Below, one piece after another: positions 519 to 25,464 of a DNA stretch of 64,000 nucleotides. The translations under genes were made by a program, and so were the position numbers. The stretch comes from Orbicella franksi. Taxonomy: Eukaryota. The stretch spans positions 18,042,001-18,106,000 of the forward strand of contig OZ116712.1 of NCBI GenBank assembly GCA_964199315.1, written 5' to 3'. The notes under the pieces are model-generated. The model had not been told where the DNA came from, searched no databases, and was given only the letters and a program-made list of their open reading frames with translations. The stretch's first letter is position 1. Every line of letters starts with the position of its first letter.

Positions 519-3500
519 CATTTCTGGTCTATGAGCTCCAGGTCCTGGTTTCAAGGTTCTATCGCCAGGTGCGTAGTTACGAGCATTCATTGAAAAGATG
601 GGCTTCCTATCTTTGTAGATATTCGGGTCAATCACTTTATATGTGCCTGGTCCCGGGGTCTGTAGAGAAATGGGAAAATTCACGTTCATCACTAGGAGTA
701 AAAAGATTGAAACGCCATGACAGCAGGATCAGTGTTAGAAGTTAAAGGAGCTGTGCCACAGTTTGTGCATCTTGAAAAATTTAGCCTACATTTTTCAAGT
801 TCATTGCTTGTAATCTGTGTCAATCTTCTCCTTCATTAACCATCCTTGTTTCTTTATGGTTTATAATTGTTACTTCTTTAGTGTTTTTCTATCTTAGCAA
901 ATTATTATTGTCAGATTTCCTTCAATTTAAAGGTAATTTTGCATATGGCCAAAATAACTCGCAATACCGTCACTGTACTCCTTTACGTGGCAAATGAAAC
1001 AGAGCTTCTCCACACTTTATCAGATCTTCTAAACAGCTCACCATTACCCCTTAACATTTCCAGGTATAATAAGAGTTGGGAACAAAAAACACAGTGAGCT
1101 CAGTCAACGCACAAGTCAACTTCTGTATATGGGGTTCAGGGCCACCTTAAGTTTTCGAGAATTTAAAGTGGTACTGACCCCATGTACGTATATTTTTTTA
1201 ATTTTGCCTATGTTACATCTTATCCTGCTAATCAAAATTCCATAATAAAAACCTGGGGGTCACCAATCTCGTTTTAGAGTTAATTTACGTTAAAGTTAAA
1301 ATAATGGTGTCTTTAGTTAGTAGGTCATAGCGCTGCTATGGTAGCCTATTGTGCCACAAAATTGATAACAACACATTTGTCAATGATTGGGCAGTTTGTT
1401 GATACCATGATTGCAGCATCAACTGATAAAGAGTGCTTATAATGACTCATCGAAATCTAAGTTTTGGAAACTACTGAAAATTGATGCCAGCCACCTTAAG
1501 CTCCCTATTAGTAATTTGTCTCCAGACAAGAGATTTTTATGTTTTATCTTCAAATTTTGCAGTATTATCTAGACCTTTGTACCTGGCAGTACACAAACCT
1601 TTTGCAAATCCTCATGAAAACTTCCAATCTTTGATCTACTTGTCATGGAGAAAGCAGCTGAGGACTTCTTTCCCACAGACTTGGGGCCAAGAATCACAGG
1701 CATGTTGTAGTTATTTGGAGCTGGATTGTTGTCGTTTTTGCCGTAGGGTGTGCGCAGTCCAAATGAATAATGTGGAGGAAAGGGATGCTTCTGAACAGGA
1801 TTCTTCTCAGCTTGATAATCCCCTTTGAGAAAGTACAACAAATCACAACAAAGTTACTGTGAAACTCAGAAAACTATGAACACCAGGAATACCTATGGAA
1901 TGTTATTGTGTAGCAAGGAAAAAAGCCAATTAGGTAGATGTGGGAAACCAAACCGCAAACAGTAGTGGTAATAAGCCATTTCCAAGTTGGTATTTTCTTT
2001 CTGTTTCAAAACGAGTTCTGGAAATGAGTTTGATTTACGAGACAATGAACGTGAAAGAAAATCTCATTTCAAAAATGAAAGGTTTGTACCAAGACTCATT
2101 TTGAAAGAGGTAAAAGTAACTTGGAAATGGCCCATTAGTTTGTGGTTTTGGGGTTTCTTCGAGTGTCCTGCCAAAATCAAATCAAAGTGTTCATAATTTT
2201 TTGAGTTTCACAGCAATACATGTACAACCCTGTCAGTAGAGTCTTCTTCGATCTTCCTAGAAAAATGGGTAAGAGGAAGGAGACTCTATGAGCATCCTTG
2301 CAATGCTTTGATTTGCCCCTCATCCAAGACAAATGACATGTCAGCCAGTTTTGAGCTGGTCAAATTGGTTTTCTACTGCTGTGCATGATCACTTGCAGCT
2401 ATTGCTGACTACTCCCACACTACGTTGCTAAAAGTTAATCAACAAATTGGCAACTGCTTTGCTTTCATACAAAGTCTCTGAAAAAGATTTTTTGGGAAGA
2501 TCGAAGGAGACTCTGTTTGCAGGGTACACATATGCTAAAATGACCCACAAAAATTTAGAAAAACAAATTAGAGCCTAAGATGCGGTTCAAAATATAAAGA
2601 TGAAGATGATGATCACAGTTCCAGAACTTGAGACTCCAGGCTCCATGAATCAACAGTAAAGCTTTCCATTCAACCAAAAATTCCTGAACTTTCAAAATGG
2701 AATGGTACATAAATTTCCTGGGAAAGTTATTGGCAAACCCACAAATTGCAGAATTTCCAAAATTCACACCATTCAATTGAAAATTCTGGACAGAAAATTA
2801 AATGGAACAGTCAAACCCCTATTAAACAGCCACCCTATTAGATGACGAGTAATTAAAGTCCCTATCAAGGCTTTTCTATTGTTTTTACCTCTGTTAAATG
2901 GCCAACCCCATTTAAAGCAGCCACTATCTATTTCCCTGAGGGTGGCCGTTTAATAGGAGTTGAAAAGTAAAAAAAAAATATCCCACAGTTTGGAGTTGTC
3001 TTCTTTTCCGTACAATCCAGAAAATGTGTATTTGCCAGTTTTCCAGAAATTCAAACCGGAATGTTTCATTGAATTTAAAGTGCAGAACATTTCTATCTGG
3101 GAAACCTTGGCTGTGCAGCTCTACTGCAAAAGGATACAATTTCCATACCCATGAAGAGTCTGAAAATTGTATGCATAATTAAGTATTCAATAATTAATAT
3201 GCCCAAAAATGGCAGGAACATTTGTTTCTCAAAGGCAAGAAAGTTATTACTAAACATAAGGAAAAACCTTATTTACATTTTGTAAATGAAATATCTGACC
3301 AAAACGTGCAAACACCTTGCCATAAAGAAGGATTTGGTCCAAAACTTTGGGCCAAATAAGAGAACAAACACGTGAATTTTCCCAAAAATATTTGGTATTT
3401 GGTTTCGTTTTGCAATCTGATTAGCTCCTGGTTGTTCTAAATGTTTCGCACCGTTCGAGTTCGCATCCAACTTCTCGATTTCTCATCGACCCAAGCAATA

Positions 3501-4219
3501 GCATTTATTCTCGTATTTGATTTGAGTCTTAAGATTAGTAATAGTAAAGCTCGAGTCTGGTGGACTATATTACCATCTCTATTGCAAGGCTTATGTCAAA
3601 AGTCAGTCCGCATTTATATGTAACTATTTAGTGCCGCAAACCAGCTTTTTTTTCTTCATCCTCCAGATCGCAGACATTAAGAGAGTTGCTCTTTTCCTAA
3701 CGAAAAAACCTTTCATTAGGTTCTGCCTGCGTTCATTTCAGGATATCTCCTTGAGAACTTTGCGTCACACGTTTCGCGTAGAATCACTCACGTGGCGTTT
3801 CCAAGGACGCGCCAATCCACGAATTTAGCAAGTGAAAATAAACTTTGCTATTGTGCGAACTTTAATCACACCACATGAGCCATGGCGCTTACAATAAACT
3901 ACATTCTCTTTTAAATAGATATAAACTTACATGGAGCTGGCGTCTGAAATTTTCCTTGTGAGTTTGTGCGAGATTTGAGAGTATATTTCGGAGTGCCTTC
4001 GGGTCCGAAGCGTGTCACATCTGTAATCCTATACTTCGGTCCTGGCCCCAGCGATTGCTGATTTTTCCACGTTCGAGAGCCAAAACTGTAAGCTGCCTTC
4101 TTGTGTTTTGTGTAGTCGTGTCCAATGTAGCCTGTTGATCCTGGTAGTTGGTAAGCCGCCGGCCCTGGTCCACGGAACATCGCTCCGATCATGGGACGTC
4201 TTCTCTCATCCTCCGCCAT
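519..4219 (-). CDS. ODF3: ODF3/CIMAP1-like SHIPPO-repeat axonemal protein, exons 1-3; 3' end lies outside the window
   Basis: Exons 4219-3931, 1822-1599 and 659-519 have GT/AG boundaries and compatible phases (1, 0, 0). They give 218 aa starting MAEDERRRPMIGAMFRGPGPAAY, with repeated PGP/PAP-x-x-Y units followed by YSFG/FSM motifs, typical of the ODF3/SHIPPO family. No terminal exon was found in 1-518. Confidence 0.85.
746..982. mobile_element. Non-autonomous DNA element with AGGAG...CTCCT termini in TTAA-like flanks (Kolobok/piggyBac-like)
   Basis: ttaa-aggagctgtgccac at 742-760; cgtcactgtactcct-ttac at 968-986. Imperfect TIRs. Confidence 0.45.
2227..2525. mobile_element. MITE with ~35-bp TIRs and apparent 3-bp TSD (ACA)
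   Basis: accctg...agagtcttcttcgatcttcc on the left matches the reverse complement of ggaagatcgaaggagactctgtttgcagggt on the right; aca flanks both ends. Confidence 0.65.
2808..2968. mobile_element. Short Tc1/mariner-like MITE (CAGT terminus)
   Basis: cagtcaaacccctattaaacagccacc versus ggtggccgtttaataggagttgaaaag, an imperfect inverted pair. Confidence 0.5.
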
Positions 4220-5622
4220 GACGACAGAAGTTTGTTGAACTATTTTACAGAAAAGCGCGTTCCGAACTTCGTCTTTGCCTCTCCAAAACTTTGTTAAATT
4301 CAACGTTGTTTAGAGATGAGCCTGATTTTCTTAAAATTTGCTGGATAAAGCGTCGACCAACGCAGAAACTGTGGCGAATCTTAACCGTAAACACAAGGCC
4401 TTCTTGATCTCCAAGGAATGGAACGATGGAATATGACACTTGTCTGTCTATTGCTGTCACGCACGGACGAATCAATCAACTCTAATGGGATTAATTATTC
4501 ATACACCATAATTTGGACCAATAGGCTGCGCGCGGATAAATTTTGGCGCCCCCAATTGAGAATCCGCCGGGACGACCACTTTGTTAATGACACAAAATCA
4601 TAAAACGACAATACATTGTTTGACAACTATATATAGAGCACACTTTGCGATCGACAATCCCACTCTTTGACTTCCTCCAAGGAAAATCTAAATTTCTATA
4701 ATTGAAAATAATACTTTCACCCTACTTTATAACATTCCACAAAAGAAAATTCTTAACGGGAAGACTAACAATTAAAATGCTGCAGAGTTAAATTTCCAAA
4801 TTATGGAGATTTCAATGTCCTCTTGATCTTCAGTGTTTACTTCTTAGTCAAATAGAAATCAATATATAGGTCTATATACTCAAATAAAAATATTAAATGT
4901 GTCCGTTTCTTAACTGTTTGAAGAATGGTTTCTTTTTATAGTTATAAACCACTCATTTCTCAAAAGAGGAATGCTGGAGCTGGAGAAAATGGAAATAATT
5001 ACTAGTGTAAGAAACCTGGTAAAATTTGTCCCCCGACTTTGAATGGCCTCACCTCTAAACTAATAAATCTGCAAAAAAATGACTTTTGCGTCCATATTGT
5101 AATCTTTCTCCTCAAATGCATTAACAATCCATCAAGTTTAAACAAAGTAAATACTAACTGTGACAGATTGGATATGTAATTTTAATTACATAGATTTTTA
5201 TGATTTCATTCTTGAATTTTCTCCTTGGTTTTAGTTTCAATTTGAGAAGATGTATCCACATTTGAGACAGTGTTGTAGCACATTTCCAAACAACTTCAAT
5301 TTCATCATAAATATTACACTGCCCATCATCTTTTCAACTCCCTTCTCAACATTTGGAAATGTGGTAAAACATGATCTCATTACTTCAAACTGATGCAAAA
5401 ATTGAAACACCATCAAAAAACTTTCACCTGTTTTTCTCACAGTATATTGCAATTTAATATTGCCACTTTCATGCACACTATACAATAACGAAAAAAGAAA
5501 AAAAAAAACAATTTAATGAGAGAGTGAAAAACATAAAACATTTTTTGTGATCATAATGCAAATAAAAAAGCCAAGGCCATAAGCTGAGAACACTTGTAGT
5601 AGTGTACTTGTAGTTCATCTTA

Positions 5623-7980: not shown

Positions 7981-8521
7981 TTATCTTCTTCCTGAGTTCA
8001 CTTTTTCCAGGATGTTTAAAAACTTCCCCCTTGTCATTTCCCGGGCTGAAAAAATGATAAAAACAAACATCAGCTATGCCAATGCATATCATAATGTTAT
8101 TACTATAAAATCCTGGTTGTCCCTATTTCAAATACTGAACAACCAAATTTGTAAATTTGATTTCCCTGATGAATCCTTTGTTGTCTGTTACATTAAAGTT
8201 TACTCATTGACATTGAGTTTCAATTTATGATTTATTTAATACAGTTAAATGGCAAATGGTAAACAAGGAATAAAATTGAAAGCCACACAGATAATTCACA
8301 AAGGAGTCTTTTTTGTAACCCGATGTGGAAACAGATTATTGTACTATATGTATTTATAAGTGTATGTAAAAAACAACATAAAGGCTAAATTAAGACAATG
8401 TGACTTACAGATGGCACCTTCTATATTTGTTTACTTTGCAAGGTTACTAATAGGGATGGACCATATTTTTGTTATGACAGGGGGTGGGTTGTTAGGCAAT
8501 TTCCAATTTTTGCCAAAAGAA

Positions 8522-8563
<42 letters not shown>

Positions 8564-11500
8564 TGTCTGTCCCTTAGAAAAACAGGTCACAGGTCATACT
8601 GACTGCCACCCACTTTTGTCAACACTTGTAGAAATTTCTCAGAAGAATTTGATCACTACGATAAATTAGAACAACATCTCCTAGTTTATTGGTTTTTTTA
8701 ATTCTTATCATCTGTCCCAGTCCACTTGACAATTCAGTGATGTTGTAAAGAGAAATAAGCCCTTGATCACTTTTCACTCTTGGGAAAGTACTCTAAGTTA
8801 GCAACTTACCTTCATCCAGGCCAAGCTGAAATGCTAGATTTTGGAGTCCACGAACTTTTTCCATTAGTTGTGATGTAGTAAGACTTCCAAATTCTACAAA
8901 AATTACAAAACAAATTGAAACAAAAAAAAGTGACATAATATGTATTATTATAGCACATCATTAAGTGCTTTGATATTAGTTCTGATTCCGAACAACCCAC
9001 AAGTATCTAACTTCTCCTTACCCATTCGAAAGTAAACCGTGAATCATTCTGTTGTGTTCCTAGGCAATACACATTTTGCTCTTACAATGCCTTTCTCCAC
9101 CCAGGTGTATAAATGGGTACCAGCAGGTAGAGGGTAACCTTGTGGTCGACAAGTATCCCAATTAAGGGAGCAGAAATATTCCTAGTCTCTTCACACAAAG
9201 GATACTAGAGATAAGGACCAGCCTAATGGGCTACTAGGCTTGAATTTAGACCACATCAAGCCAAGAGATATCATTCTATTCCTGAAATCATATCAGAGAC
9301 TGTTACGCGCAAAGATTTCTGAGTTGTACCTTGCAACATGTCCATGTCATCTTTCTCTAGTTCAGCCAACCATTTTGGTGGAGTACTTGATAGAGAAAAG
9401 GGCTGTAATGTTTAACAAAAACAACATTGTTAATATCATGTTCTATGTCCCTACATAATATTATATTGTATATATATCAGTGTTTTGGGTCAATTTTTGC
9501 TCTTTTTAAAATGAACGCAATCAGTTTACTCCCAGCCATTTGTTGGTGACATGTGTAAGTATTATGTCAGCCGACAATTGGTTGGCAGTTAACCCCCAGC
9601 CTAAAATGGGAGCCTTTTTCATAATGACCAAATATTAAACATTTATTTAAATGGATGTAAAAAGTGAAACTAAGAAAAGTGGTAAGTACTTACACTAACA
9701 GCAAGTGAGGCAAAGTCAGACACTCCAGGAACTGTCAAGAGTAAGGTATGAAGTACAATATTTTTAATGTAAAATCATAGAAGGGAATTATATGATCTGG
9801 TAACTAACATGAATGTAGGCAATTAAAAGAATGTAAGAATGTTAGGTACCATACATACTAGGTTGACAAGATCTGTTTGGCTCTGTCAAAAATGTCAACA
9901 AATTTTGTCTCCACCAAATTTGGAATTTTATAATCGCGTACGCACTTGAAAACACCAAAATATTTGATAACCACAAGTTAGTGTCAATCACGTTGAAAGT
10001 ATAGACTCTAAAATGCAAGATGAAATTTACTTGATTGACGTTTTCAGTCAGATAAACGCCTCCAAATTGTAAAATCTGACAGCTTTGACCCTTGACAAAA
10101 ATTTGTCCTGTTCTGAGGCAGGACGATGGTGCCTTTGAAGTTTAGTAGGCTTGACAAAATTCTGGTAAGACAAAAAATCCTGTTCACACTTGTAGAACAC
10201 AACTGATGACAAATATTTTTGCAAAATAAACAAAAATTTGCCTCGTGGGAACAGGCCCTTAGGCTCAATTTCTGCCACTTTCTCAGGTCTCCCTTTTGGG
10301 TGGAAGAGCACGGCTCATTAATTTTCCTGTACGGTGGCTGGTAACCAAGCCTTTAGGAATGCAGGCAGGTGAAATCTGCGTCCTTTTCCAAGATGGTGAA
10401 TGAGGGGATCTGCTTGAGCCATCATAACTATTATATTCTTGTGCTAACTGGTTAGTAGCAAGGTGAAAAGACTTTTTCGATTCAATTTCTTTGCCCTTCT
10501 CTCTTGCCTAAAGCCATAGTCAAATGGACTAGTAAGTAGTCGCAAGTAGCTGCAAGTTAAACTTCCACAGAGACTTGTGTTGGGTAGTACACACAAGTAC
10601 ATACAAGTTGTAGAAAAACCCATTTTGAGGATATGGCCTTACTCCTATGCAGCTGAAATGTAACCATCACAAAAACAAAATGGTAGATATTACAGACATA
10701 CCCAGGGATTGGGAAGGCCATGTGCCACGTGCATATGGCGCATAAAGCTACAAAATGGCGCATTTTGGAAGTACTTGCTGGGCCTGCAATGCACCCTAGC
10801 CATGAAACAGCAAGTAAAGTATATACTATTTTGTGGAAAGGACTTTCATTTCTGAAGTTTTCAGTTTTAGTAATGATGAATAAACGTGAAAAATCACGAT
10901 GCCTTTGCTCTAAATCAACGCTTTAAAAGTGTTCGCTTTGTTTTCGTCCCCAGATCCCTTACTCGTACTATGCTCGGAAATGACGTTTTCGCTCAATCCA
11001 TGTGCTTTCTGTTTTCATTGATAGAATTGGCTGACTTGAATAAGTTTTGCATGCAATAATTAGCCAAATAATATGTCTCCGGAAGCGAAAGTTCCGAAAT
11101 TGGATGTCCAAGACTTGGAGATTGTTGCCGTTTTACAAAATGAATGCCGATTCTACTTGAGGGATGTTGAGTACGAAGATGGCACAGGGGAAGTTTTAGC
11201 ACATATCTTAAATGAAGCCCAGAAAAGGAATATACCTGTTAGAAAGATGATTGGATTTGGTTCTGATGGAGCGAATGTCATGAGTGGAGAAGGAAAAGGC
11301 GTAAATGGGAGGCTGAAGGAACAAAATGTGCACCTGGTATCACTTGTCGAAATTTTTTTTATGGCCCATTTATTTCCCTAATGGCCCAAACTTTTTACAA
11401 ATGGCCCATAACTTTCCACTACGGCAGGCCATAGGCTCAATTGCCTGTTTTGCCTTCCCAATCCCCACATATGATGTATTTCATTGACTCACAGACTGCT

Positions 11501-12184
11501 ATAACAATGAATGGACATCACTCAACTTGCATTGACTTGGGTTGCGTGACCAAACTATGAAAACTTGCGTCTACTTGCGTGCATATTGGATCTCCACCAA
11601 AGTGAGCACAAGTCATCCCAATTCAACGCAAGTGCACCCAAGGCCTGGCCAAACAGAGTCGCAAGTAGACCCAAGTTTTCACCTTGCGTCTACTTGTGAG
11701 TCTGTTTGCCCAGGGCTTAAATTTTAACATTCTCTAAACTACAAACTTTACACCAGAAAAATTACTTATCTCATGTTCAGAGTTTACTTGCTTCCAAGCC
11801 GACCCTGATAAACTTTTACAATTTGGTAAATTAAACCACCTTTATACTGACCAAGGATCATGTTTGTACAGTGCAACTCAAAAATAAGTTGATTATATGC
11901 TTCTGCTCAAGTACACTAGATACTCAAAATAACTTTAATTTATTTTTGCAGACCAAGTGTATAAAATGCAAAAAGCTAAGCATCACCGTAACTCACTTTG
12001 CTCTGGCCACAAATCAGGTGAAGCCCTATCCAGCCGTTCAAAACTTAAAAGACCTTGCAAGCTTTGATCAAGTTCTACAAAGACAAACAGATCAAGATTG
12101 AACATGAGTACAGAAACGAGATATAGAAAAAACACTTGATCTTAGAAATTAAACGTAATAGCGCTTCAAACCTGGTGATTCCAT
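7981..12184 (-). CDS. LIN52: Protein lin-52 homolog (MuvB/DREAM core subunit), 116 aa, 6 coding exons
   Basis: Coding exons 12184-12172, 12074-11997, 9731-9694, 9402-9330, 8893-8810 and 8045-7981, all GT/AG and in phase (351 nt). Translation: MESPELDQSLQGLLSFERLDRASPDLWPEQIPGVSDFASLAVSPFSLSSTPPKWLAELEKDDMDMLQEFGSLTTSQLMEKVRGLQNLAFQLGLDEAREMTRGKFLNILEKVNSGRR, matching recalled LIN52 blocks (LLSFE.LDRASPDLWPEQ; LMEKVRGLQNLA.QLGLDE.REMTRGKFLNIL). A probable 5'UTR exon ends at 12316 (GTGAGT donor). Confidence 0.95.
8522..8563. repeat. (AAT)n microsatellite in the last LIN52 intron
   Basis: About 14 perfect AAT units. Confidence 0.95.
9040..9250 (+). mobile_element. Degenerate 5'-truncated SINE of the same family as 23264-23552
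   Basis: Shares tgtgttcct.ggcaa.acac and tctccacccaggtgtataaatgggtacc with the intact copies. Confidence 0.65.
9880..10258. mobile_element. Second, diverged copy of the 5623-6009 Harbinger-like MITE
   Basis: Shared internal blocks (aaatttacttga, aaaatttgtcct, ggtgcc.tt.aagttt.gta.gcttgacaaaat, aactgatgaca) and an ggccc-tta right end. Confidence 0.55.
11073..11345 (+). pseudogene. Relic of a hAT (ZNF862-like) transposase in the long LIN52 intron
   Basis: EDGTGEVLAHIL...MIGFGSDGANVMSGEGKGVNGRLKEQNVHLVS matches the second catalytic-Asp block (GSDGAxxMxG...GV...L) of that hAT clade; homology stops before the expected HCxxH. Confidence 0.7.
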
Positions 12185-12500
12185 TTCTCTTATTCCTCAC
12201 AATTCAGCTACAAAATAACGATTTGAACTAACAAAACGAGCAACAATTTATCAAAGAATACAAGAGAAAATTCAACTTCTCCGCCTGAGATTGTACGGTC
12301 GTCCCCAGTACTCACGGATGTAGTGTTATCTCCAAATATGGCAACGGCACCTTAGGGACCTCTCACGTGTTCTGAGATAAACGTAGCCGCTGCCCCCTGA
12401 CCCTCCCTCCAAACTCTACATAAGCCCCTTGGCATCTGGTCCCCGTTCTTTTCCACGTTCGAATTTTGGTCACAGACCTCAGAAGATTAGTAAACGAAAA
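12185..12500. promoter_or_regulatory. Bidirectional promoter shared by LIN52 and ALDH6A1
   Basis: Divergent ATGs at 12184 (-) and 12501 (+); locally CpG/GC-rich; E-box CACGTG at 12364-12369. Confidence 0.7.
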
Positions 12501-15500
12501 ATGCTTCGATCTGCCAGCTCTTTTTCGCGTTTGCTTAACAGCAGCAAAAAGGTAAAGGTAAACTGTAGCTGGGTGCGTGTGTTTTTCTAGGAGAAAGTCT
12601 TCGCTATAGATATTTTTAAGTGCTATTTCATCAATTTGTACATTTCGAAATTTCTCTGGCGTTACGTTGGTCAGGTTACTAATGTTATCAAGCTTATTTT
12701 AATGCGTTCTGTATACCCATGTATATATTAGTGTACAGTACGTTTTTAAAATTGGCCTTACCTCACTTAAATACAGTAACAAAGGGATCTCAACAGTTGG
12801 AGTGAAGTAGAAATATCTTATTTGTATGACACATGACACCAGACTAGACGTGTTAATAATATTGAGCTTATTGACTGTGCGTGCCAGACAGGAAAATATT
12901 TGGCTATGGTCCTCAATGCTCTCGGTCCATATGTCCATGTGAGTCCTGACCTTGAGCCAAATATTTTCCTATCTGACCCAACCTTATAGTCAACAATTAT
13001 TTTATACGACCTTTGGTTTGTAGCGAGGGCCTCCTGGAGGTAGCCTGTGTGCATCTGTCCTCTTCTCTTAAAAAGTTGGGAAGAATGTAGCTTTACGCTG
13101 GTTTCCTGGGTGGGTATCCATGACAACACTGTGGGAAGCAACCACTAGGCACCACCACACTGAAATATATCAGTGGAAGTAAAATACTTACCCTGTACTT
13201 ACCTGAAGGAGGGAAGGGCTGAAATGGCCTGACAAGAGCTGTAAATTCACAGGCCGCCCTGCACAACCCCACAGACAATCCAGCATAGAGGAGGGTAACT
13301 GCTGGCCACTACAGTTGTCTCAAGTTTAACTTAGCCTAAATTATATTTAGCCACATTACATTATCCATATCATCTGGAGCCCTAAAAAATTAACCCGCGC
13401 AAAAAAGTGGTAGGACTACAGCGCTACCAACCCTTCCCCCTCTGTAATACCCGTGTAGTGTTCCATATGGGGTAGTTACATGTCAGGATGGTCTTGTTTT
13501 GAATGAGTCAATATTGTCAAGTCATGTTAGCTGATAGAATCTAGCGCGATTGTTCAGTTTAATTCTTGTTTTCATTATCACATAGACGGCTCCATTGGCA
13601 GCAGCATGGAAGAGATTTTATGGTGATGGTGTAAGTGTTGAAAACACTGAGCCTTTATATATGAATTTTTTAGGATCAACAATGCTTCTTTAACAAACAA
13701 ACATTTTGTATTCATTTGCCATTTACATAATAGTTTTATGGAGAAATTTAAAACATTTTAAGAAAGGATACCTCACCAATATACGAGATGGAATCATAGT
13801 GAAATAGGCCCCTTGCATGATCCGGTCAAATGGTACAAAATCACACATGCTAGGATGCAAGTTGCACAGTGGGACTTCCAAAACAAAAGCAGGTCAAGAT
13901 GGACTGGTACGAGTTGCTTTGTTTTGGAAGTCCCACCGCGCAACTTGCATTCCAGCATGTGTGATTTTGTACCATGTGACCAGATCGTGCAAAGGGTCTC
14001 AGTTGTCAAGTTCCCTACTTAGTTCTATTACTCATTAAGTCAATGTTGCCTTTGCCTTTTTTTCTGAAAGTCAAACACAAAGCTGTTTATCAATGGCCAG
14101 TTTGTTGAGTCCTCGACCGACAAGTGGATTGACATTCACAATCCAGTAAGTGCACATAATTTTCTTAGTTATTCTTTTGACTGGTTCTTTCTGTTAATCA
14201 CACAAGGCTTGGTTTTTAACTCTCAAAATTAGGGTAAAATTATTGTTGGACTGAGTGAAGGAAAATGCTTTTTGGTTTGAAGAATCGGGAGGTTCCAAAA
14301 ATTGCATATTTGAAAAATTGATATAATTCCACTGTGTATTGCTGGAACACTTCTCTTCCATTACAAGAAGCTGACTTTAATTTTGTTCTCAAGGCATGTT
14401 GTTACAGAGATGTATTACATGATGTTCAAAATGATATAGTTTAATACATTTTTCTTAGGCCACTAATGAAGTCATCTCTAGGGCCCCTGAGACCACCAAT
14501 GCTGAGATGGAATCAGCTGTTGCTGCAGCAAAAGCAGCCTTTCCTGGTTGGGCTGATCAGTCCATTCTGTCTCGGCAACAAATCATGTTTAACCTTCAGC
14601 ACCTTGTCAAAAAATATATGGTATGAAGTCAGTTAGTTTCTTTATTGTTGATGTCTTAGAGTTCACACATTGCCCAGGAGAACGGCTTCCTTCCTTAGAC
14701 AAGTACCGTAAATCCTCGAATTAGCTCCTCCCCTTTAATAAGCGACCCCTTCGAATAAGCACCCCTCCTATTGGCCGAAATTTGAGATAAGTTCCTCCTC
14801 TGGAATAAGCCCCCCCCCCCCCCCCCGCCTCCCTGGCCTCCCCATGTTTTATGGAATATTACTGAGAAAAGAAACAATAACAGTTTTCATCGTGTTCAAT
14901 CACAAGCAAGTGATTATCGACTCATTCAAGCACTGCACATCGACCATTGCAATGGATGGGAGTGAAAATCTGCTGATTCATTGCCTAATGCCCAACTGAA
15001 TCTTGTGCAGCAGGCCAACCAAGACTGTCTAAAGGGGTTATATTATGTAATTCTTCAAGAGAGACAGGATCCTTCTGACACTTCTGAGGGACTGACACAC
15101 ATATAAAATTACAAAAAACAAGATTTGGGAAAAGTTAAAAGAGCATCCGGTCGATTAAGTACCTCCCTCAAATAAGCACCCCTGTCTTCTCCTAAATTTG
15201 AAATAAGCACCTTGGGTGCTATTTCGAGGATTTCAGGTATTAGGGAAGTTTCAATAGCAGTAGAAAGTATGGATTTGGTGTATAGCCAGGACAAAAAATT
15301 CTGGCCATTGTGAAAGTGAAGTGGTTACCACAGAGAGGTTATCATTAGTAGAGGTTTATCTGCATTTAATCACGTGTTTATTACATAAATTTAAAACCAA
15401 ACAAATCAGGATTTCAATCTTGAATCTTGTCGTTTTTTTAACAGAAAGAAATTGCTGATATAATCACCATGGATACTGGCAAGACAACAGCCGATGCTAT

Positions 15501-18500
15501 GGGCAGTGTTCAAAGAGGACTACGTATGTTTTTTTTGTTTCTAAATGGAGACAATCAGTTGGTTTATCACCTGTCAACCTGTTACTCATAAGGATATACC
15601 TGCCAACTTTTTTTGAGTTATAGGCGTGAGATTTTTATCCTGGGAGTGCTGGGTTTTTTGAAGACGACACAAACATATCCGAATATTCCCAAAGACATCC
15701 GAAAACTTCTGAACATGTCTGAAGTCTTCCGAAATTTGCATGCAATAGGAGAAGCAGAAACAGCCCTGATATTTCCCAGTCCCAGGCTCAGGATGTGTAT
15801 TGCTAAACACAACCTCACTTCCAGTACTTTCTATTTGAAGAAGGAAGTATCGTCATTTACACAATCATAGTTTTCATTTCTTGCATTGGCTTGAGTTTAC
15901 ATATTTTTGGAAATTGTGTCAAGCAAAGCTGCAACCACTCACATTTTTCAATCAGGCATGAGAATTTGGCCTGTAAGCATGAGCCAGTGTAAGATTGAAG
16001 TTTTTAATCTGCGGGCATGAGACGGGCATGAGTTGGCAGGTATATACTTCAATGTTATCAGCTGGCTTAAATATTCATAGTTTAAATATTAATCTCTTAC
16101 TAACTGAACATGAGGGCCATACTGGGGAATTGATTGGCCTGAACCCATGGAGCTGGCTAGTATGGACCAAGCCCTGCAAGGTACATACAAAAACCACTGA
16201 GGGCCAATATTCCCCAGTCCTGCTTGAGCCAGCTAGGTTTACTTAGTAAGTAGTTTATTATATATATGGCCCTCAGGCCATACTTGCTGGCTTTCAAAAA
16301 CAAAAAAATACATGGCTTATGATAAGAAAAAGTCCATATGGCAAAATCCCAACCAGGAAAGAACTAATCAAAAAATAATTATTATGCTCAGATTTACCTC
16401 AAGACTACCTTGCCATATTATAATAAAACATGGTTTTGACTGATAATGTTTGATATTTTTTTGCTTTCAGAGGTTGTTGAACATGCCTGCTCAATCACCT
16501 CTCTACAGATGGGTGAAACAGTGTCACAAATCACTAAGGACATGGATACTTATTCATACAGGGTTCCATTGGGCGTCTGCGCAGGAATCACACCGTATGT
16601 TGATTATTATGATGTGGCTCAACTTGTCTAATCTGAGCACAACATTTTCATGGTTGGCAAAGACCTTGAAAAGTTTGGATCATGTGTACTAAAGGCATCC
16701 ATGGTCAAGTGTCGATCAATACCTTCGATCGACCCTTGATTGATACTCAGTCAACACTCCATCGACACCTAGATCGACACTCCATCAATATCTCGGTCGA
16801 CAGTCGACTAATTTTTATTAGATTCACATGAGTCGGTCGACACTTGGCCGACTATTGACTGACTGTTGATCAAGTGTCGATAGAGTGTTGACCGAGTGTA
16901 GATCAGGATGTTGATCTAATATTGATCAAGATGTCAATCCCAGGGTATCGATCGAGATTGTGGATCGACACTCGACCACACATGCGTGAAGTACACATGA
17001 TCCAAGAGTTCTTACAAATGGAAAGGGTGATAGTAATGTCCCCAGTAATTTCTTATCTCAAGACCCCCTTGGTTTATCTCTGCAATTCTCCTAACTGCTC
17101 AATCTGTAAAAAATTTATAAATATTTGTAAGGAGATTTTAAAGGTTGACATTGTGGACTATTGTTTGTTCCCAGGTTCAATTTTCCAGCAATGGTGCCAT
17201 TATGGGTTAGTTCAAATAATAATGATATACAGTGAAACCTATATTAAACGGACACCTTTGGGACCCTCACTAGTGTCCACTTAAAACAGGGTGTCCGCTC
17301 TAAACAGGTTCAGCAATAATAGTTAATTGTTAACCCTTTTGTAACACAGTGTAAGATCAAAGACTGCTCATAACACAATGTCCAGACAGACAATGCACAA
17401 ATCTGGAATAATCTACTTAGCTTTAAAACTAGTGACATTCGGTGAACAATGTTAAAAGAGTCTGAGCTGAGCTTCAAGAAGTAAAAAGCCCTTAAGTGTC
17501 CGCTTATTGCAGATTTTGAGCAACAAAATGGCTTAATATTGGTTTCTGCGTCGGCTTAATAGAGGTGTCTGCTGAATGCAGGTTTATTTTACAGCAAATG
17601 TGGGAAGAAAATGTAGGGACTCAAGCTGGTGTCCACTCAGTAGATTGTGTCCGTTTAATAAGGGGTCTACATTATTCAGGTTGCCTGGCCTGTAATAATA
17701 AATTAGCTACTAGGCTCAATCATAAAATCCACGTCCTTTTTCATCACAACAGTTTTTAAGTGACATGCAATTGTAGTGTCTATAGTTGTTTGTTTTTTCA
17801 TGACCTGATATCTGCAGTTGTCCTTTGTACAAAACAATGTTTAGTGTGGTTAGTCTAAGCTTCAATGAGTCACATCTATCCTTTAAATGTTAATAGCTGT
17901 TTATGAGGATTAATTCTGTTGGTAAGCAAACATCACCAGTTGTGGACACTTGTTCTGCTTCCTGCAAGTGCCCTCTATACTATTATAGTACCTAAGCTAA
18001 TGCTTTTTGGCAACCATCTGACTATATACAAACTCTAAAAGAAAACCTGTTCACGGTAATAACACGTGGTAAATGTCACTGCAGATGTTTCCTATGGCAC
18101 TGGTTTGCGGCAACACAATGGTCATGAAACCATCTGAAAGGAACCCTGGTGCCACCATGTTCATCATGAAACTGGCACAAGAAGCTGGCATTCCTGATGG
18201 CTGCATAAATGTTATACATGGATCTGTTGAACGTAATAATATTTTTTATGTTTCTATCAATAAAGAACATTTTGTTCCCTTTTAAAGTTTCATGGTCTTG
18301 AGACCTAAAATTCCAAATTAAAGTTCTTTTGAATATCTTTATGGCCTCAAATTTGCACCAAAACAGAATGTCTGTAAATTCCTGGCTGGTAACGTAATGG
18401 TGACACACTGGTTGTTTTGATGCTTGGAAAGTTGAAAAGGATACACTTAACAGTGTATGAGGGACATGTGACACAACATACATGTTTGATGCAAACCTGC

Positions 18501-21500
18501 CACCCAACATGTACCCACACACACTAATAAAATAATTTTTTGTGTGTGACATCTGAGGAGCAGACAGAACTACGTTCAGTAGTTTGGTGGGAATGCAATC
18601 ATAATACTGAACAGCTTTTATTTTTTTAATTTGTAGCTGTCAGATTCATCTGTGAGCATCCTGACATCCGTGCCATTTCATTTGTTGGTTCAGACACAGC
18701 TGTAAGTGTGTAATTTGAGATTTCCACTTATTCTTGTCTGAATTAAAAACAACAGACATTTATAAAGGAATTTCTTTTACTTTTCAGGGAAAATATATCT
18801 ATGAAACAGGTTCCAAGCATGGAAAAAGAGTGCAGTCTAACATGGTAAGTTTTCCAAAAATTCATTGTGTTGTTTCAGAAAATATCCCACCTCCCCCACA
18901 GAAGGGATTTTTCTCTAAGACACCCTGCCCCCACTTCTGGAAATTTCAATTAAGCTTCATACATTTCTTTCTCCACTCTTAAAGAACCCTCCATCCCCCC
19001 AGGGACCCTTCTGTTGGGGGAATACTTAATTTTTCTCTAATTTGTATGAACTGAAAGGCAAAACTAACGGTCATTGAATGTTGTATTTGCATTCATCATG
19101 TGCCCACAACTTCCTTTGTCACTATATTATTTCACTTTCTATGTCTATATCAGAATATGAGACTCTTTGAACCATGCTTTCAGATAGTAGAAATTGTGTT
19201 CCATTGTTGTTGACCAAAGTACTCTTTCAGCTTCAGCATTGTTGGGAAGAAATTTACTAGCTTAAAAGAAACTTTGTGTGATCATTATTGATCAAATCAA
19301 CAACAAAGTGATGTGTTATTTGCAAAATTCTTGCTGAATCCCAATTAAACAGTGACGTAAGACAGCAGATGATGTGTAACCTCTTTTCTTGTCGCCTTTT
19401 GTTAAATAGCCTCTTCTACATACCGGTAATTTATGTATCAGTAGTGATAAATATATTCCACTTGCAGTTTTTAAGAGTAAAGCCGGCAACCAAATGTTGG
19501 AAATATTTCTATGATAGGAAACCAAATTCTTCCAACTGGCACTGCAAGGAATGTATAGACAGTAGTTTGGAGAATTTTTTAGTTGATGTCAAGAATATCT
19601 CTTTTATCTTCTTCTTCCTAAAGGGAGCAAAGAACCATGGCGTTATCATGCCTGATGCTAACAAGGAAAACACAATAAACCAGGTTTGTGGTCATATTTA
19701 AAAAAAGAACACATTCCTTTTTTCTAGTAAGTTAGAACTGCAGTCAAGTTCATATTTTGGAAAACAAGAAATGCTGTGGGAACATTGACTAAAGGTTACT
19801 CTGCAAGCTGTTGGTTTCTCCTACGCAGCTAACTGCTCACAGGGCAGCCATAGGCGAGTATTTCCAGAGCTTTTTTGAGTTTTTTTAAGCTGTTTCAAAT
19901 TCTTTGTATGTTTATTAATTTATTGAGGGGTCTATATTGCCATGGGTGAATGTGAAAATACAATTATTTGTTCCTTATGTTTTAGCTCGTTGGAGCAGCA
20001 TTTGGTGCCGCTGGTCAAAGGTGTATGGCTCTTACCACAGCGATATTTGTCGGAGAAAGCCAAGAATGGATTCCAGATCTTGTAGCCAAGGCTAAAGAAC
20101 TCCAAGTTAATGAAGGTGTGTTTTAAATACAGTCGAACCTCTCCACAACGGCCACCTTCGGGACAGAGGAAAGTGGCCGTTATAGGGAGGTAGGAGTGTA
20201 ATGTGACACCTGTTTTTTCGGGGAAGCAACATTTGTTTTCTTAAAAATACTTATTTTAACATAAACTGAACGCAACACAATCAAAATATATCAATAAAAC
20301 AGAACTTAACAGAAACAGAGGCCAACGAAGCGTGGTGGTGACCTCCAATAAAAAATGGGTGGCTGTATACACCGTTCGTCTATCAGTTGTTAACAGGTCT
20401 TAACTGGCTCTTGTGGAGAGGTATTTTGGCAGTCGGGATGTGCTTTATCGGCCGTTACCGTTGTGGAGAGGTGGCCGGTGTAGAGAGGTTAAGCCCCGGC
20501 CAAACGATCGCAACATTGTTGGTCGCAGCATGTTGCGCGTAGCCTGCGAGCAGGCTCACGTTGGAGCACAATCGCGCGCGGCGTAGCCGTGAGCGCGAAA
20601 TCGAGCAGCGATGCCACCAGACTCCTTCCCGCCGGATCGCTTTGCCCTTCGCCGCTCGCGCGCGACTCAAAGGTGAGCCTACTCGTAGGTTATGTTGCGC
20701 GCGTTTCGCCAGCCTTTTGCGACGTGTTGCGACATGTTGCAAAATGTTGGGTATCGTTGGCTCAAAGTTGAAAATGGTCAAATTTTTCATGCAACATTTG
20801 TGGATGTTGCATGATGTTGTAGTCGTTTGGCCAGGTTCGTGCAACAATGTTGCGCGCGGGTATGCGCACTAGTTCGATTTTCAATACCCAACATGTCGCA
20901 ACAGGGTGGCCAAACGCAAGCAACATGTTGCCCCCAACAATGTTGCGATATGTTGCGTTCAAATGTTGCGATCGTTTAGCCGGAGCTTGCAAGTACTGGG
21001 CCAACAATGTTGGGATATGTTGTGCTGATCGTTTGACCAGAGCTTCACAACTTATACTCAAAGTTTTGACAATTTCTTACCTGGAGATTTTTATACCATT
21101 TCCCTTCAATTCGAAAGTTCTGTTATTTTGGATTGAATGTACAGTTCCCACGATCTTAACTGAATGAAGAGAAATTTGTGGAAATTTGCGCTTGCGCTTG
21201 TGCTTATACCTGCGTCAAGGCCGTTTTCACGTTGAAATAAGAAATATTGTGCTTGCCCTTGTACTTGCGTCCCTAGTGAAAACCAGGCTCAAGACGGATT
21301 GTCAGTCTTTTTTTCCCTCCACTTTCTTATCTTCCTTTTCTTGCTCTTTTCCCTCTATTTTTCTGTTTTCATCGCTTGGAGTGATTTTAAGGCCTTGAGG
21401 AGTCGTGAAATCAAAGTGCATATGGGTGATTTGGTTCAAAGTATTGACATGGTTTTCATAAATCCAGTCATATATATAGTTATTACAAACTGAACATTTC

Positions 21501-24500
21501 TTTGATTAATGAGAATGTAACTCTAAACCTCAGTGCAAGTAAAAAATTGTTTTCATTTCATTTCTGTAGGTCACCAGCCTGGTGCAGACCTTGGACCTGT
21601 CATTTCTCCGGCATCAAAAGAACGTATCTGTAATTTGGTGCAGTCTGGTGCTGAACAGGGAGCTAAGGTAACCTGAATGGGCGGAATTTTCCGAGTGAAA
21701 TTCCGACAGCAGTCGGTATGTTCTCGCCAGCCTATCGGAAATAAACGAAGCCGAGAGAACTCGACAGAGACACGGTTTAATGTTTCTTCTTGGGATACCA
21801 CAATGATATATAAGTAACTTGTACTTAATTGTATGGTTCTGATAGAACTGTCCGCTTTTCCAATTTCAGCCTTGCTTGGACCACCTATTTAAACGATTAA
21901 AGCAACCATAAAAAATTTTCACGGGTAAAATTTTGTAAATTTGATGCTAGTTTTAAATATCCGAGTCACGCCATAACTTTTGAACATTTGGAAGAGAGCA
22001 GCTAAAAGGCCTGCAACACTGAATACAAATTTCTAATCGAAAAAATTCTGTTTCCCTTCTCTAGATTGAGTTGGATGGCCGTGACGTGAAAGTAAAGGGT
22101 TTTGAGAAAGGAAACTTTATTGCACCAACCATCGTGTCTAATGTCACAGTAAGTAAACGTGACCAGCCAGTTTCTGAGTGTACTCAGCTGAGCTCTTTGA
22201 TTGGTTACAAAATATCGTGCAACCAACGTGTTTTAGCCAATAGGAGCAAAGGTGCTGGGGTTTTTTTTCAGCAGTCACAGGCACACCAACCATGATGTGG
22301 CTGGCGCGCGTTTTCCCGCGCTTTGCAACTTTTGCGTGCTATGACTTCGAGTTCTGATTGGCTCATTGAGTTATTTACATTCCTTGTGATTGGTCAGATG
22401 CGATTACTCTGATTTTAGTTTCACTTCAGTCATTGCAAAAGGTTTTTAGCACGGTTTCCATGAAGCAATATGCATCCTTGTTTTCATAAGCAACACCTTC
22501 TCTCTTGTTTATCAAGAATAGGCGCCTGTGTGCTTTGATCAAGTGGACTTCTCGCTGCTGAAAATAAACACCTACACCGCTAACAATCCTAGAATTTCTT
22601 CTATAAGGATGTAAAGCTCAAAATATTATTGAGTTATTAACTGTTTTTTGCTTTCCTATTTTAGCCGGAAATGACGTGTTATAAAGAGGAGATCTTTGGA
22701 CCTGTTTTGATCACTATGAATGTGGACACACTGGATGAGGTACCCTGAACGATCAACAAGTATTTTTCCCTCGTAATATCAAAACATTTTAAGGCATACA
22801 GGTGACGAGAATAAAGTGGGTGAGATTTTTTGGATGCAATACCGAAATATCTCACAGTCTTACTAACATTGAAAGAAGTTTACCATAAAGTTATTCGTTC
22901 GTGCGTCGGTTCGTTCGTTCGTTAGTTCTTTCGTTCGTCTGTCAGTTTTTTTGTTCGTAACACCAGTTGGACGGAACTTCATTCCAGCTCTCCTTGAGGC
23001 GTAACAGTAACTTGCTAAAGTAACTAAATTAACCTTTACCTAACTGAGTTTTGTTTTTCTTGAATTCAAGGCCATTGACATAGTGAACAAAAACCCCTAT
23101 GGTAATGGTACCGCCATCTTCACGAACTCTGGAGCGATCGCACGAAAATACCAACACAAAGTCGATGTTGGACAGGTGTGTTTAAATCTTCATTGCGTGT
23201 TGTTTTGTTTCATACAAGAGAAGACAAAGGGCGAAAGAGTTAATCCCCACATAGGCCTTATGTGGAGGCGCGGTGGGATCATGGTTAGTGCGCTCGTTTC
23301 CGGATCGAGCGGTGCGGGTTCGAGCCCTGCCCGGGGACATTGTGTTGTGTTCTTGGGCAAGACACTTTACTCTCACAGTGCCTCTCTCCACCCAGGTGAA
23401 TAAATGGCTACCAGCGAATTTAATGCTGGGGGTAACCCTGCGATGGACTAGCATCCTATCCAGGGGGGAGTAGAAATATTCCCAGGCGGTTCATGTTACG
23501 GAAACTGGGATAAGCTCCGGCCTGGTGGGCCACTTGGCTCGTGTGCAGACTTCTTTCAGGGTTTGAGCCCTGGCCAGGGACATTGTGTCGTGTTCTTGGG
23601 CAAGACACACTAACTCTCACAGTGCCTCTCTCCACCCAGGTGTATAGATGGGTACCGGCGAATTTAATGCCGCGGGTAGCCCTGCGATGGGTTAGCATCC
23701 CATCCAGGGGGGAGGAGAAATAACCAGACATATTACGTGAATGTATTTGTGCAGGAAGAAAATGCGAACATACATGTGAACAGCAGATGAGCGATGATGA
23801 AGGATATCTTGGGTTAATTTTATGTATTTGTAATTTTCCTATTATAGTTTTTCTCACTATGTTAGGAGTAAGATGTTAAATAACCTCTTCCTAACCTCTT
23901 CCTCTCCGCGCTTTTCTTATTTTTTTTTCGCGCTGCGCCCCAACTAACTAAACGCCTGGAAGAGGCTGGTTGTTAAAGATTAAAGAAGTCAATTTAATCG
24001 CGCAAAGACAAACTTTGATTTGCAGCATTCAATTTGTGCCGTAGGGTTATCGTGAGCTTCTAGTATGCAACAAAGTTGTAACAAATATATCGTCCCTGAA
24101 ATGGTACAGAGAGAGGATTAAATCTAGTTATATGGCAAGTGAGAAGAGAATTTGTGCGGGTTATTTACGTTAAAATTTTTTGCTCAGATTGGCGTCAACG
24201 TTCCCATCCCTGTTCCACTGCCCATGTTTTCGTTCACCGGATCGCGTGGATCTTTCTTAGGAGATTCGCACTTTTACGGGAAACAGGTAATGCCCAATAG
24301 ATTAAATTTCACTCGATGTACTTTTTATCCTATTTTCATTTCTTAGGCTGTGTTCACACTTGGTGCCCAGAACGGTGCTAGAGTATGATTCTTGTTGGGC
24401 ATGTGTGAACACAACTTTTTTCCAAGTACTCACACCAGAATTCAGGCACAATGCTCGAGCCTGGGTGCAGGGTCTCGACCGTGTTCTCGGGCATCAAATG

Positions 24501-25464
24501 GTCCTTGGGTCTTTAGATTAAACCGCGTCTGAACGTAACACTATTTTGTGCCACTGCCCAGGCACCAGTGCTTGGGCATCAAGTGTGAACTCAGCATTAG
24601 ATCTCAGGCGTGGGTTGTTCGAAAGGTGGATAACGCTATCAACCATATAACCAATATCCTGTGGATAGCGTGGTTTGTTTTTTCAGCACATATCCACTGG
24701 ATAGTGATTTATCCGGTGGATAGCGTTTTCCAGCCTTTGAACAACTCGAGAAAGAGAAAGAAGAAGTCCAGGTTCCTGGCTAGCGAGTGTAATAAGGCAG
24801 AGTTTTATATGTCCATGCATCTTTGTTTGTAAATACTCTTTTTATGCGGAGCTAGACTATCAGTAAGGGGTTTAGATGATTTGCATTACGAGTGACGTTT
24901 GGAAATTCTCACAAAATTCAGTGCTCCAGCCTTAAGGCGGGTGCCATTTGAAAGTATTCTCGGACTAAGAAGACGAGTGGTGCAAAGCTTCGATCGCTCG
25001 AGTTTTCATACGATTACACATTTATTTCATGAGTGAGGAAATTACGAATGCGCCTGTAGTAATTAGCTTTGGAATGCAAATTAAAAAGAATAATGATAAA
25101 TTATCCGGCCAGCTCTCAGCCAACCAGAGTGACGTAATTTACGGAATTACGGAAAACCGACCGTGTGGATACAGTCAACAGCAGTTTGATGCCAATATTG
25201 GGGAGGGGGGGGGGGGGAGGGGTTGGAGGGATAAATCAGGTTACCCTTTCCCCCACCCCCGGAGGCTAAGATTTGTTCGAACGTAACGTCACTAACTCGT
25301 GTTACCTTTATCGACCTCAAGTTGGCTAGAGTATTGACTTTTTCTGTCTTTCCTTTCTTCAGGGTATCAACTTTTACTTAGAAGTCAAAACCATCACAAG
25401 CCTTTGGAGAGACGAGGACGCCGAAGCTCTTAAGGCCCCGACAGCTTTCCCCACCATGAAATAA
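12501..25464 (+). CDS. ALDH6A1: Methylmalonate-semialdehyde dehydrogenase [acylating], mitochondrial; 529 aa, 18 exons
   Basis: Exons 12501-12551, 13586-13630, 14071-14145, 14459-14620, 15445-15523, 16471-16594, 17175-17205, 18085-18232, 18637-18701, 18788-18844, 19624-19683, 19986-20115, 21570-21667, 22065-22148, 22665-22739, 23071-23175, 24188-24286 and 25363-25464; all GT/AG, phases compatible, 1590 nt. Motifs: [42 protein letters not shown] (catalytic Cys at 20022-20024), [29 protein letters not shown]. The Arg/Ser-rich N-terminus resembles a mitochondrial transit peptide; exons 1-2 are the least certain. Confidence 0.95.
13809..13996. mobile_element. Hairpin MITE with ~80-bp inverted arms in ALDH6A1 intron 2
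   Basis: ccccttgcatgatccggtcaaatggtacaaaatcacacatgct...gggacttccaaaacaaaagc is mirrored by gctttgttttggaagtccc...agcatgtgtgattttgtaccatgtgaccagatcgtgcaaaggg. Confidence 0.8.
14706..15237. mobile_element. Tc1/mariner-like MITE with TA TSD
   Basis: ta-ccgtaaatcctcgaattagc on the left, gctatttcgaggatttcagg-ta on the right; internal aataagc-ccc repeats. Confidence 0.7.
16677..17003. mobile_element. MITE with 14-bp TIRs and internal TCGA(T/C)C-rich repeats
   Basis: ggatcatgtgtact ... agtacacatgatcc, a perfect inverted pair. Confidence 0.7.
20128..20488. mobile_element. Truncated Tc1/mariner-like MITE abutting a TTAA element
   Basis: tacagtcgaacctctccacaacggccacc on the left, partial inverse ggtggccggtgtagagaggtt on the right. 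Confidence 0.55.
20493..21043. mobile_element. Palindromic TTAA-flanked element rich in ATGTTGC/GCAACAT
   Basis: ttaa-gccccggccaaacgatcgcaacat on the left; atgttgcgatcgtttagccggagc (to 20986) and a second right-end copy to about 21043. Confidence 0.65.
20540..20692. mobile_element. 153-bp nested MITE with TAG-initiated TIRs and a 9-bp TSD
   Basis: tagcctgcgagcaggctca / tgagcctactcgtaggtta (3 mismatches); TGTTGCGCG duplicated at 20531-20539 and 20693-20701. Confidence 0.75.
23264..23552 (+). mobile_element. tRNA-derived SINE, near full length
   Basis: A-box-like tggttagtgc and B-box GGTTCGAGCC, followed by a body (gggcaagacactttactctcacagtgcctctctccacccaggtg...gggtaaccctgcgatggactagcatcc) found three times in the window. 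Confidence 0.8.
23559..23712 (+). mobile_element. Second partial SINE copy directly downstream (tandem dimer)
   Basis: Restarts at the B-box region gggtttgagccctggccagggacattgtg and repeats the body. Confidence 0.75.
24346..24596. mobile_element. PIF/Harbinger-like MITE with TTA TSD
   Basis: tta-ggctgtgttcacacttggtgccca ... tgggcatcaagtgtgaactcagca-tta. Confidence 0.65.
24603..24747. mobile_element. Short palindromic GGATA/TATCC-rich MITE
   Basis: gttgttcgaaaggtggataac ... gttttccagcctttgaacaac; a second copy lies at 62532-62679. Confidence 0.65.

Follow-up and report, generated by a model that had tools for sequence, protein, structure and literature searches.

Recorded divergent pairs and the coral LIN52-ALDH6A1 locus

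Conserved ancestral gene pairs in animals are enriched for the 5'-5' orientation and for very short (sub-kilobase) spacers, and co-expression is raised among the conserved 5'-5' pairs (Irimia et al., 2012; PMC3514665). LIN52 and ALDH6A1 form such a pair in the stretch of Orbicella franksi DNA analysed here (contig OZ116712.1, forward-strand positions 18,042,001 to 18,106,000; the whole 64,000 nucleotides are referred to as the window). They match this class in being arranged 5'-5' with mostly tight spacing, and qualify, informally, as conserved ancestral microsynteny: non-paralogous orthologues that stay adjacent in the same orientation in several distant animal clades. The HSPD1-HSPE1 pair described there likewise joins two broadly used genes 5'-5' across a very short spacer and is conserved across phyla; its products belong to one complex and are strongly co-expressed, whereas LIN52 and ALDH6A1 have no known common function.

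In human, LIN52 and ALDH6A1 are listed as a divergent pair whose starts lie 460-464 bp apart (supplementary tables of PMC3815023 and PMC12672016), which bears out the arrangement on 14q24.3 that a preliminary description of this DNA had given. The coral locus contains the same orthologues head-to-head across a sub-kilobase spacer, with ~165-190 bp between the coral transcript starts as against 460-464 bp in human, and the alpaca locus confirms the mammalian layout. These lists centre on human or on vertebrates and take no outgroups besides fly, worm and yeast, and the pair is neither discussed in them nor dated beyond vertebrates. Davila Lopez et al. (2010) recorded MMSA-LIN52 as conserved in human, chicken and Xenopus only. 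The pair also appears in the 49-genome synteny set of Robert et al. (2022; PMC8851819, supplementary file 4), within block 6428, classed as 'Bilateria novel' and consisting in scallop of an unnamed gene, a tyrosine kinase, LIN52 and ALDH6A1. Its LIN52-ALDH6A1 adjacency and kinase neighbour recur in Lottia, Lingula and Lamellibrachia. While that block comprises four orthogroups dated to Bilateria, the two-gene core is found here also in the window, in Acropora and on a third hexacoral contig (L034), and the presence of the core in two deeply split coral clades and on the hexacoral contig makes it older than the 'Bilateria novel' label.

Text searches returned no paper discussing the LIN52-ALDH6A1 pair beyond livestock and human association-study loci. 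The pair is already recorded, in supplementary tables only, and is best described as real and old but ordinary and partly catalogued; with the human pair and the bilaterian block both in published tables, no new kind of system is revealed. The additions made here are modest, namely the extension of the pair to Cnidaria (both major stony-coral clades) and the definition of the coral promoter to within ~200 bp.

A short spacer between two divergent transcripts

The junction in the window is made up of the following features.

12172..12300, minus strand: LIN52 exon 1, coding part 12184-12172 (splice joint, read depth and mRNA contig L012)
12301..12462, no strand: spacer between the transcript starts, ~165-190 bp, very probably a TATA-less bidirectional promoter core (almost no RNA depth in bins 12276-12463)
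12463..12551, plus strand: ALDH6A1 exon 1, with a 38-nt 5' untranslated region (UTR), ATG at 12501 and 17 codons (contig start and RNA joint)
12762..12881, minus strand: alternative LIN52 5' exon, within ALDH6A1 intron 1 (mRNA contig L013)

The start codons read from the window sequence, 12184-12182 (minus strand) for LIN52 and 12501-12503 (plus strand) for ALDH6A1, are those given in the preliminary description and lie 316 bp apart. Of its boundaries for the junction, 12172 is the last base of the tiny first coding exon of LIN52, and on the other side ALDH6A1 exon 1 ends at 12551 rather than at 12557. Both genes are intact, spliced and expressed according to spliced models, RNA reads and mRNA contigs. 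The junction region is colinear with DNA from two other corals, and RNA covers the genes on both sides of it.

The transcript starts were placed with two raw polyA runs and two RNA contig sets positioned on 11900-14700. On the LIN52 side, read depth over exon 1 runs to ~12275 and is then near zero, so that the 5' UTR extends to at least ~12276; the alignment of the spliced LIN52 mRNA contig of a related coral (L012) covers 12300-12174, and the start within ~12276-12300 is therefore probably near 12300. On the other side, the first base of an RNA contig after its Illumina adapter is at ~12463, with almost no reads upstream, which places the ALDH6A1 start there. From these positions it follows that an untranscribed spacer of ~165-190 bp separates the two transcription units, about as long as a single nucleosome-free region. 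Between the ATGs, GC content over the 316 bp is 0.44, compared with ~0.38 in the surroundings. The two genes lie on opposite strands with facing 5' ends, their starts are less than 1 kb apart and no gene intervenes. We regard a true bidirectional promoter as very probable. A similar layout is seen in Acropora digitifera, where the 5' end of a LIN52 mRNA contig (L009), at L008:9877, precedes the LIN52 ATG by 124 nt and leaves 174 bp between itself and the ALDH6A1 ATG (9703) on the opposite strand.

Three sequence elements between the two start codons were considered.

12364..12369, no strand: E-box CACGTG, near mid-spacer, ~65-90 bp and 94 bp from the LIN52 and ALDH6A1 starts, respectively
12458..12463, no strand: TTCGAA hexamer, adjoining the ALDH6A1 transcript start and within 45 bp of the ALDH6A1 ATG
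12267..12285, no strand: longest conserved intergenic block, 19 bp, AAAATTCAACTTCTCCGCC, in all four corals compared and within the first bases of the LIN52 5' UTR

The E-box and the hexamer are both present exactly where the preliminary description had placed them, and their proposed role as shared control elements is unsupported. If the E-box were such an element, the pair might be kept by selected co-regulation, with a factor of the USF, MYC/MAX or TFE-type basic helix-loop-helix leucine-zipper (bHLH-Zip) class coupling cell-cycle exit to mitochondrial valine/pyrimidine catabolism. Consistent with this, CACGTG lies almost in the middle of the window's spacer and recurs in the spacers of Acropora (TCACGTGA) and Saccoglossus, at a chance expectation of 0.04 per spacer, and a site of this type is found near the LIN52 ATG in Saccoglossus and amphioxus. 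The raised co-expression of conserved 5'-5' pairs (PMC3514665) and the similar exon depth of both genes in polyA run X24 point the same way. However, in the four-coral alignment the E-box position reads CACATG in L033 and TACGTG in L034, no CACGTG was found in the Lottia, Lingula, alpaca or Lamellibrachia spacers, and no motif is common across phyla among the LIN52-ALDH6A1 spacers compared, so the E-box is weakened as a conserved shared element. Run X22, at very low coverage, has LIN52 reads and no ALDH6A1 exon reads. Literature searches returned no paper linking the functions of LIN52 and ALDH6A1, in agreement with the earlier remark that no functional tie is known. Selected co-regulation through a spacer element is accordingly judged unlikely. 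A fuller version, in which the junction predates Bilateria or possibly arose in still earlier animals and has been kept by selected joint control of a DREAM subunit and thymine-valine catabolism through an E-box factor of the bHLH-Zip type, is improbable as a whole; its age component is well supported, its functional-coupling component is not.

The hexamer had been put forward as CHR-like. In DREAM/MuvB target promoters the CHR (TTYGAA) is located near the start of transcription and is often preceded by a CDE at a distance of four bases, and LIN52 is a core subunit of MuvB/DREAM. The window resembles these targets in having TTCGAA near the ALDH6A1 ATG and in that LIN52 itself encodes a MuvB subunit. 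It differs from them in that the hexamer is unconserved (TTCGAT in Acropora; deleted in L033 and L034), occurs at chance level (0.77 TTYGAA expected per 316 bp) and coincides with the ALDH6A1 start, and there is no GC-rich CDE-like site four bases upstream of it in the window. On these grounds the CHR reading of TTCGAA was rejected, and no support was found for DREAM control of the window promoter. Conservation among the corals lies elsewhere: the 19-bp AAAATTCAACTTCTCCGCC block is also contained in the Acropora mRNA contig L009, and shorter blocks such as AGCCCCT (12423-12429) are kept as well.

Age of the pair and the reason for its retention

The pair was surveyed in other animals by requiring, in annotated loci, a PF10044 gene next to a PF00171 gene on opposite strands with 5' ends facing. 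Orthologues were reached through a truncated fluke ALDH6A1 (P0113), which led to the ALDH6A1 set, and through a LIN52 exon within a long open frame at the Lingula locus, which led to the LIN52 set; protein searches with one ALDH exon gave mostly exon-sized fragments and plant proteins, leaving P0113 as the only bridge to full-length animal orthologues. Seven annotated head-to-head pairs were obtained.

Branchiostoma floridae (L001): annotated head-to-head pair, ATG gap 1621 bp
Saccoglossus kowalevskii (L002): annotated head-to-head pair, ATG gap 320 bp
Lottia gigantea (L003): annotated head-to-head pair, ATG gap at most 663 bp (first mini-exon missing from the annotation)
Lingula anatina (L004): annotated head-to-head pair, ATG gap 237 bp
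Alpaca (L005): annotated head-to-head pair, ATG gap 562 bp
Acropora digitifera (L008): annotated head-to-head pair, ATG gap 297 bp
Lamellibrachia satsuma (L010): annotated head-to-head pair, ATG gap 3369 bp

In the sea spider Pycnogonum litorale, which has no annotated neighbour at this position, tblastn places ALDH6A1 exons divergently upstream of LIN52. Scanning metagenomes with the LIN52 profile yielded mostly transcripts or contigs, two of which carry the pair by tblastn: L034, whose LIN52 is closest to coral LIN52s (a hexacoral), and L032 (an invertebrate). Consecutive locus tags of the two proteins suggest that the pair is also present in Solemya velum, Patella caerulea and Potamilus streckersoni. 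Adjacency and orientation are thus kept in Anthozoa (the window, Acropora and L034), in the four protostome phyla Mollusca, Brachiopoda, Annelida and Arthropoda (Pycnogonum), and in Hemichordata, Cephalochordata and Mammalia.

By our own estimate (~20,000 genes), a given gene becomes the divergent upstream neighbour of another with a chance of ~1 in 40,000 per lineage, so this recurrence is far beyond chance, and it is not credible that the arrangement arose independently in at least eight phylum-level lineages. Artefacts do occur in draft assemblies, and the Lingula locus, with its module in tandem and several ALDH exons doubled, might be cited in favour of a chance or convergent adjacency or of an assembly or annotation error. 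Against this, the same orientation is shared by independent assemblies of about ten named taxa and by the metagenome contigs, and in the window itself the colinearity with two other corals and the RNA on both genes speak for a genuine junction. This explanation has a negligible probability and is effectively refuted by the repeated same-orientation adjacency in independent assemblies.

Shared ancestry of the pair is almost certain. Most simply, it was inherited from the common ancestor of cnidarians and bilaterians, if not from an earlier one, and has since been broken at least two or three times. The proposal that a bidirectional pair was inherited from the common ancestor with vertebrates is thereby supported. 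Absence from most intermediate lineages, named in the preliminary description as the outcome that would speak for chance convergence, is not what the survey found: the pair is missing in only three of the sampled lineages.

Taken together, the age and the compact promoter suggest why the junction persists. The pair would have been head-to-head already in the cnidarian-bilaterian ancestor, and independent breaks would have followed in one scyphozoan and one echinoid at least, with insects a probable further case. Both core promoters would lie within one nucleosome-free or otherwise accessible region of less than 200 bp, and a separating breakpoint would have to hit this tiny interval, damaging the promoter of at least one single-copy, broadly used gene. 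With a breakpoint target so small and so damaging, the junction would survive by purifying selection against breaks. Retention would then follow from cis-regulatory entanglement and the small breakpoint target, and no biochemical link between DREAM/MuvB and valine/thymine catabolism would be needed. We consider it likely that the pair is an ancestral divergent one sharing a single compact bidirectional promoter and kept by entanglement; for the narrower question of why it has been retained, we lean towards entanglement rather than selected co-regulation.

Several observations weigh against this account. The ATG gaps of 1.6 kb in amphioxus and 3.4 kb in Lamellibrachia indicate that tight spacing is not universal. 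In the jellyfish Rhopilema the pair is broken: the gene upstream of LIN52 is on the same strand, and ALDH exons are absent within 10 kb; in the sea urchin Strongylocentrotus it is also broken, an amino-acid transporter gene lying 70 bp head-to-head with LIN52; and in the locust Schistocerca nothing is annotated within 10 kb of ALDH6A1, an annotation-only result in which the pair is not seen rather than proven absent. Within Cnidaria, the survey covers stony corals, a further hexacoral contig and one scyphozoan. The transcript starts come from contig ends and the drop in read depth in slightly divergent strains, so the exact bases are approximate, and the read depth for comparing the expression of the two genes is thin in both runs. 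Broken as it is in jellyfish and sea urchin, and probably in insects, the pair is under a constraint that is strong but not absolute.

A different source of constraint would be a regulatory block, in which distal regulatory sequences serving the partner gene, or a third gene nearby, lie in the introns or flank of one member of the pair, which is then retained as a bystander. The extended synteny with kinase, nucleoside transporter and SH2/SOCS-box neighbours and the alternative LIN52 5' exon inside ALDH6A1 intron 1 are compatible with such an arrangement. However, the flanking genes vary among cnidarians, protostomes and deuterostomes while the LIN52-ALDH6A1 junction is constant, so that a pair kept after all of its flanking genes have changed, as would be expected without a block, is largely already the case. 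Neither LIN52 nor ALDH6A1 belongs to the developmental regulators that anchor such blocks, and both are compact in the window (LIN52 4 kb, ALDH6A1 13 kb). We consider this explanation highly improbable.

The locus represents a clean, RNA-supported case of what is very probably a bidirectional promoter of less than 200 bp that has united functionally unrelated genes since before the cnidarian-bilaterian split. It shifts a published block classed as 'Bilateria novel' to an older node, and offers a test case for whether such pairs are kept by co-regulation or by inseparable promoters, with the natural breakers (jellyfish, sea urchin, insects) available for comparison.

Further observations from the survey concern individual lineages. 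The Pycnogonum ALDH6A1 exons (L011:172-1384) are 60-73% identical to the Saccoglossus query and are unannotated, so that synteny surveys based on annotation alone would miss this pair. In Lingula the module of LIN52 and ALDH6A1 5' exons occurs twice in tandem (L004:3293-9763 and 14259-20825) with identical 237-bp spacers, and the ALDH6A1 exons for residues ~258-492 are doubled as well; the promoter module has either truly been duplicated in tandem or is represented by haplotypes left uncollapsed in the draft assembly. Several metagenome LIN52 contigs have 2.5-7 kb of upstream flank without ALDH exons. On three others (L014, L015 and L016; 9-15 kb) a full-length LIN52 frame is intronless with no ALDH6A1 exons nearby, representing either a retrocopy or an intron-poor animal. 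Tables for the sponge Amphimedon list an MMSDH gene, Aqu2.1.28296, starting near 10.6 kb on its contig, and do not give the upstream neighbour.

Gene models and flanking genes

The remaining coding exons of the two genes are as follows.

12074-11997, 9731-9694, 9402-9330, 8893-8810 and 8045-7984, minus strand: LIN52 coding exons 2-6 (spliced model guided by coral LIN52 proteins)
13586-13630, 14071-14145, 14459-14620, 15445-15523, 16471-16594, 17175-17205, 18085-18232, 18637-18701 and 18788-18844, plus strand: ALDH6A1 coding exons 2-10 (RNA joints and guided spliced model)
19624-19683, 19986-20115, 21570-21667, 22065-22148, 22665-22739, 23071-23175, 24188-24286 and 25363-25464 (with stop), plus strand: ALDH6A1 coding exons 11-18 (guided spliced model)

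The LIN52 model has six coding exons and encodes 116 amino acids without an internal stop. The coding part of exon 1 contributes Met-Glu-Ser-Pro plus one base, intron 1 occupies 12075-12171 with its joint (12074|12172) present in 39 RNA reads, and exons 2-6 fall within 7981..12074 and end with the stop codon at 7983-7981 (minus strand). Every exon is matched by the mRNA contigs L012 and L013. Exon pieces score 34.1 and 25.6 bits against Pfam PF10044 (cut-off 22). Of the 116 residues, 111 are identical to the Stylophora protein P0351 and 79 to a mammalian LIN52, and over the matching part of Stylophora pistillata LIN52 a single residue differs. By this closeness the window, which is stony-coral DNA, falls in or near the pocilloporid (robust) corals. 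The N-terminus of LIN52 carries an LxSxExL pocket-protein motif followed by a Ser-Pro site (S28 in human) used by DYRK1A. Both are present in the coral model (LLSFERLDRASPDLWPEQ) in the same pattern as in the mammalian protein (LLSFEKLDRASPDLWPEQ). The tiny first coding exon ending in phase 1 is common to the window, Acropora, amphioxus, Saccoglossus and Lingula, with four to six codons in the invertebrate and coral models; the longer annotated first exon of alpaca ends in the same splice pattern, Met-Ala-Ser-Pro followed by a phase-1 intron.

The alternative LIN52 5' exon is defined by contig L013 (98-100% identical to the window), which aligns at 12881-12762 and then at 12076-11997 with a GT donor on the minus strand. 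The resulting isoform is spliced to exon 2 and bypasses both the shared promoter and exon 1. An in-frame stop before exon 2 makes the alternative exon non-coding in the window, unlike the Stylophora annotation P0351 (157 amino acids), which reads a longer LIN52 N-terminus from it. Through this isoform the two transcription units overlap in antisense by ~420 bp.

The ALDH6A1 model comprises 18 coding exons for 529 amino acids with a single terminal stop at 25462-25464 and GT-AG boundaries in every intron. The first three introns are supported by RNA, including the joint from 12551 to 13586 that leads into the 45-nt exon 2 (13586-13630), and those beyond the third rest on the guided spliced model. 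The coding sequence of exon 1 is conserved among corals, and its 17 codons specify a basic sequence, rich in hydroxylated residues, that resembles a mitochondrial presequence. TIGR01722 (methylmalonate-semialdehyde dehydrogenase, MMSDH; NCBIfam) was the top match for all five ALDH exon pieces tested at 47-71 bits each, its whole-protein cut-off being out of reach for single exons, and other ALDH families scored far lower or not at all. The protein shares 66-67% of its residues with the Saccoglossus, amphioxus, Lottia and alpaca orthologues and 51% with a plant MMSDH. The catalytic-cysteine context in exon 19986-20115 reads AAGQRCMAL.

Within ALDH6A1 intron 2, ~190 bp at 13806-13996 fold back on themselves with an inverted self-match of 82% and show very high RNA depth with many variant contigs. 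No Rfam match was obtained in 11900-14200, this fold-back included; it resembles a miniature inverted-repeat transposon that is present in many copies and included in other transcripts.

Finally, the genes flanking the pair differ between lineages. Beyond the LIN52 3' end the window contains SHIPPO/ODF3-like exons with PGPG repeats (~500-4310, minus strand), and Acropora has a SHIPPO-repeat gene at the same position and in the same orientation (L008:13374-18274), so that coral synteny spans three genes. Lottia, Lingula and Lamellibrachia have a tyrosine-kinase gene past LIN52, in agreement with the published scallop block. In amphioxus, Saccoglossus and sea urchin (L001, L002, L007) an equilibrative nucleoside transporter gene (PF01733) is situated just past the LIN52 3' end. 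This PF01733-LIN52 arrangement constitutes a second conserved adjacency, again involving nucleoside metabolism, and is kept in sea urchin despite the departure of ALDH6A1. On the opposite side, amphioxus (L001) and Lingula (L004) each have an SH2/SOCS-box gene downstream of ALDH6A1.

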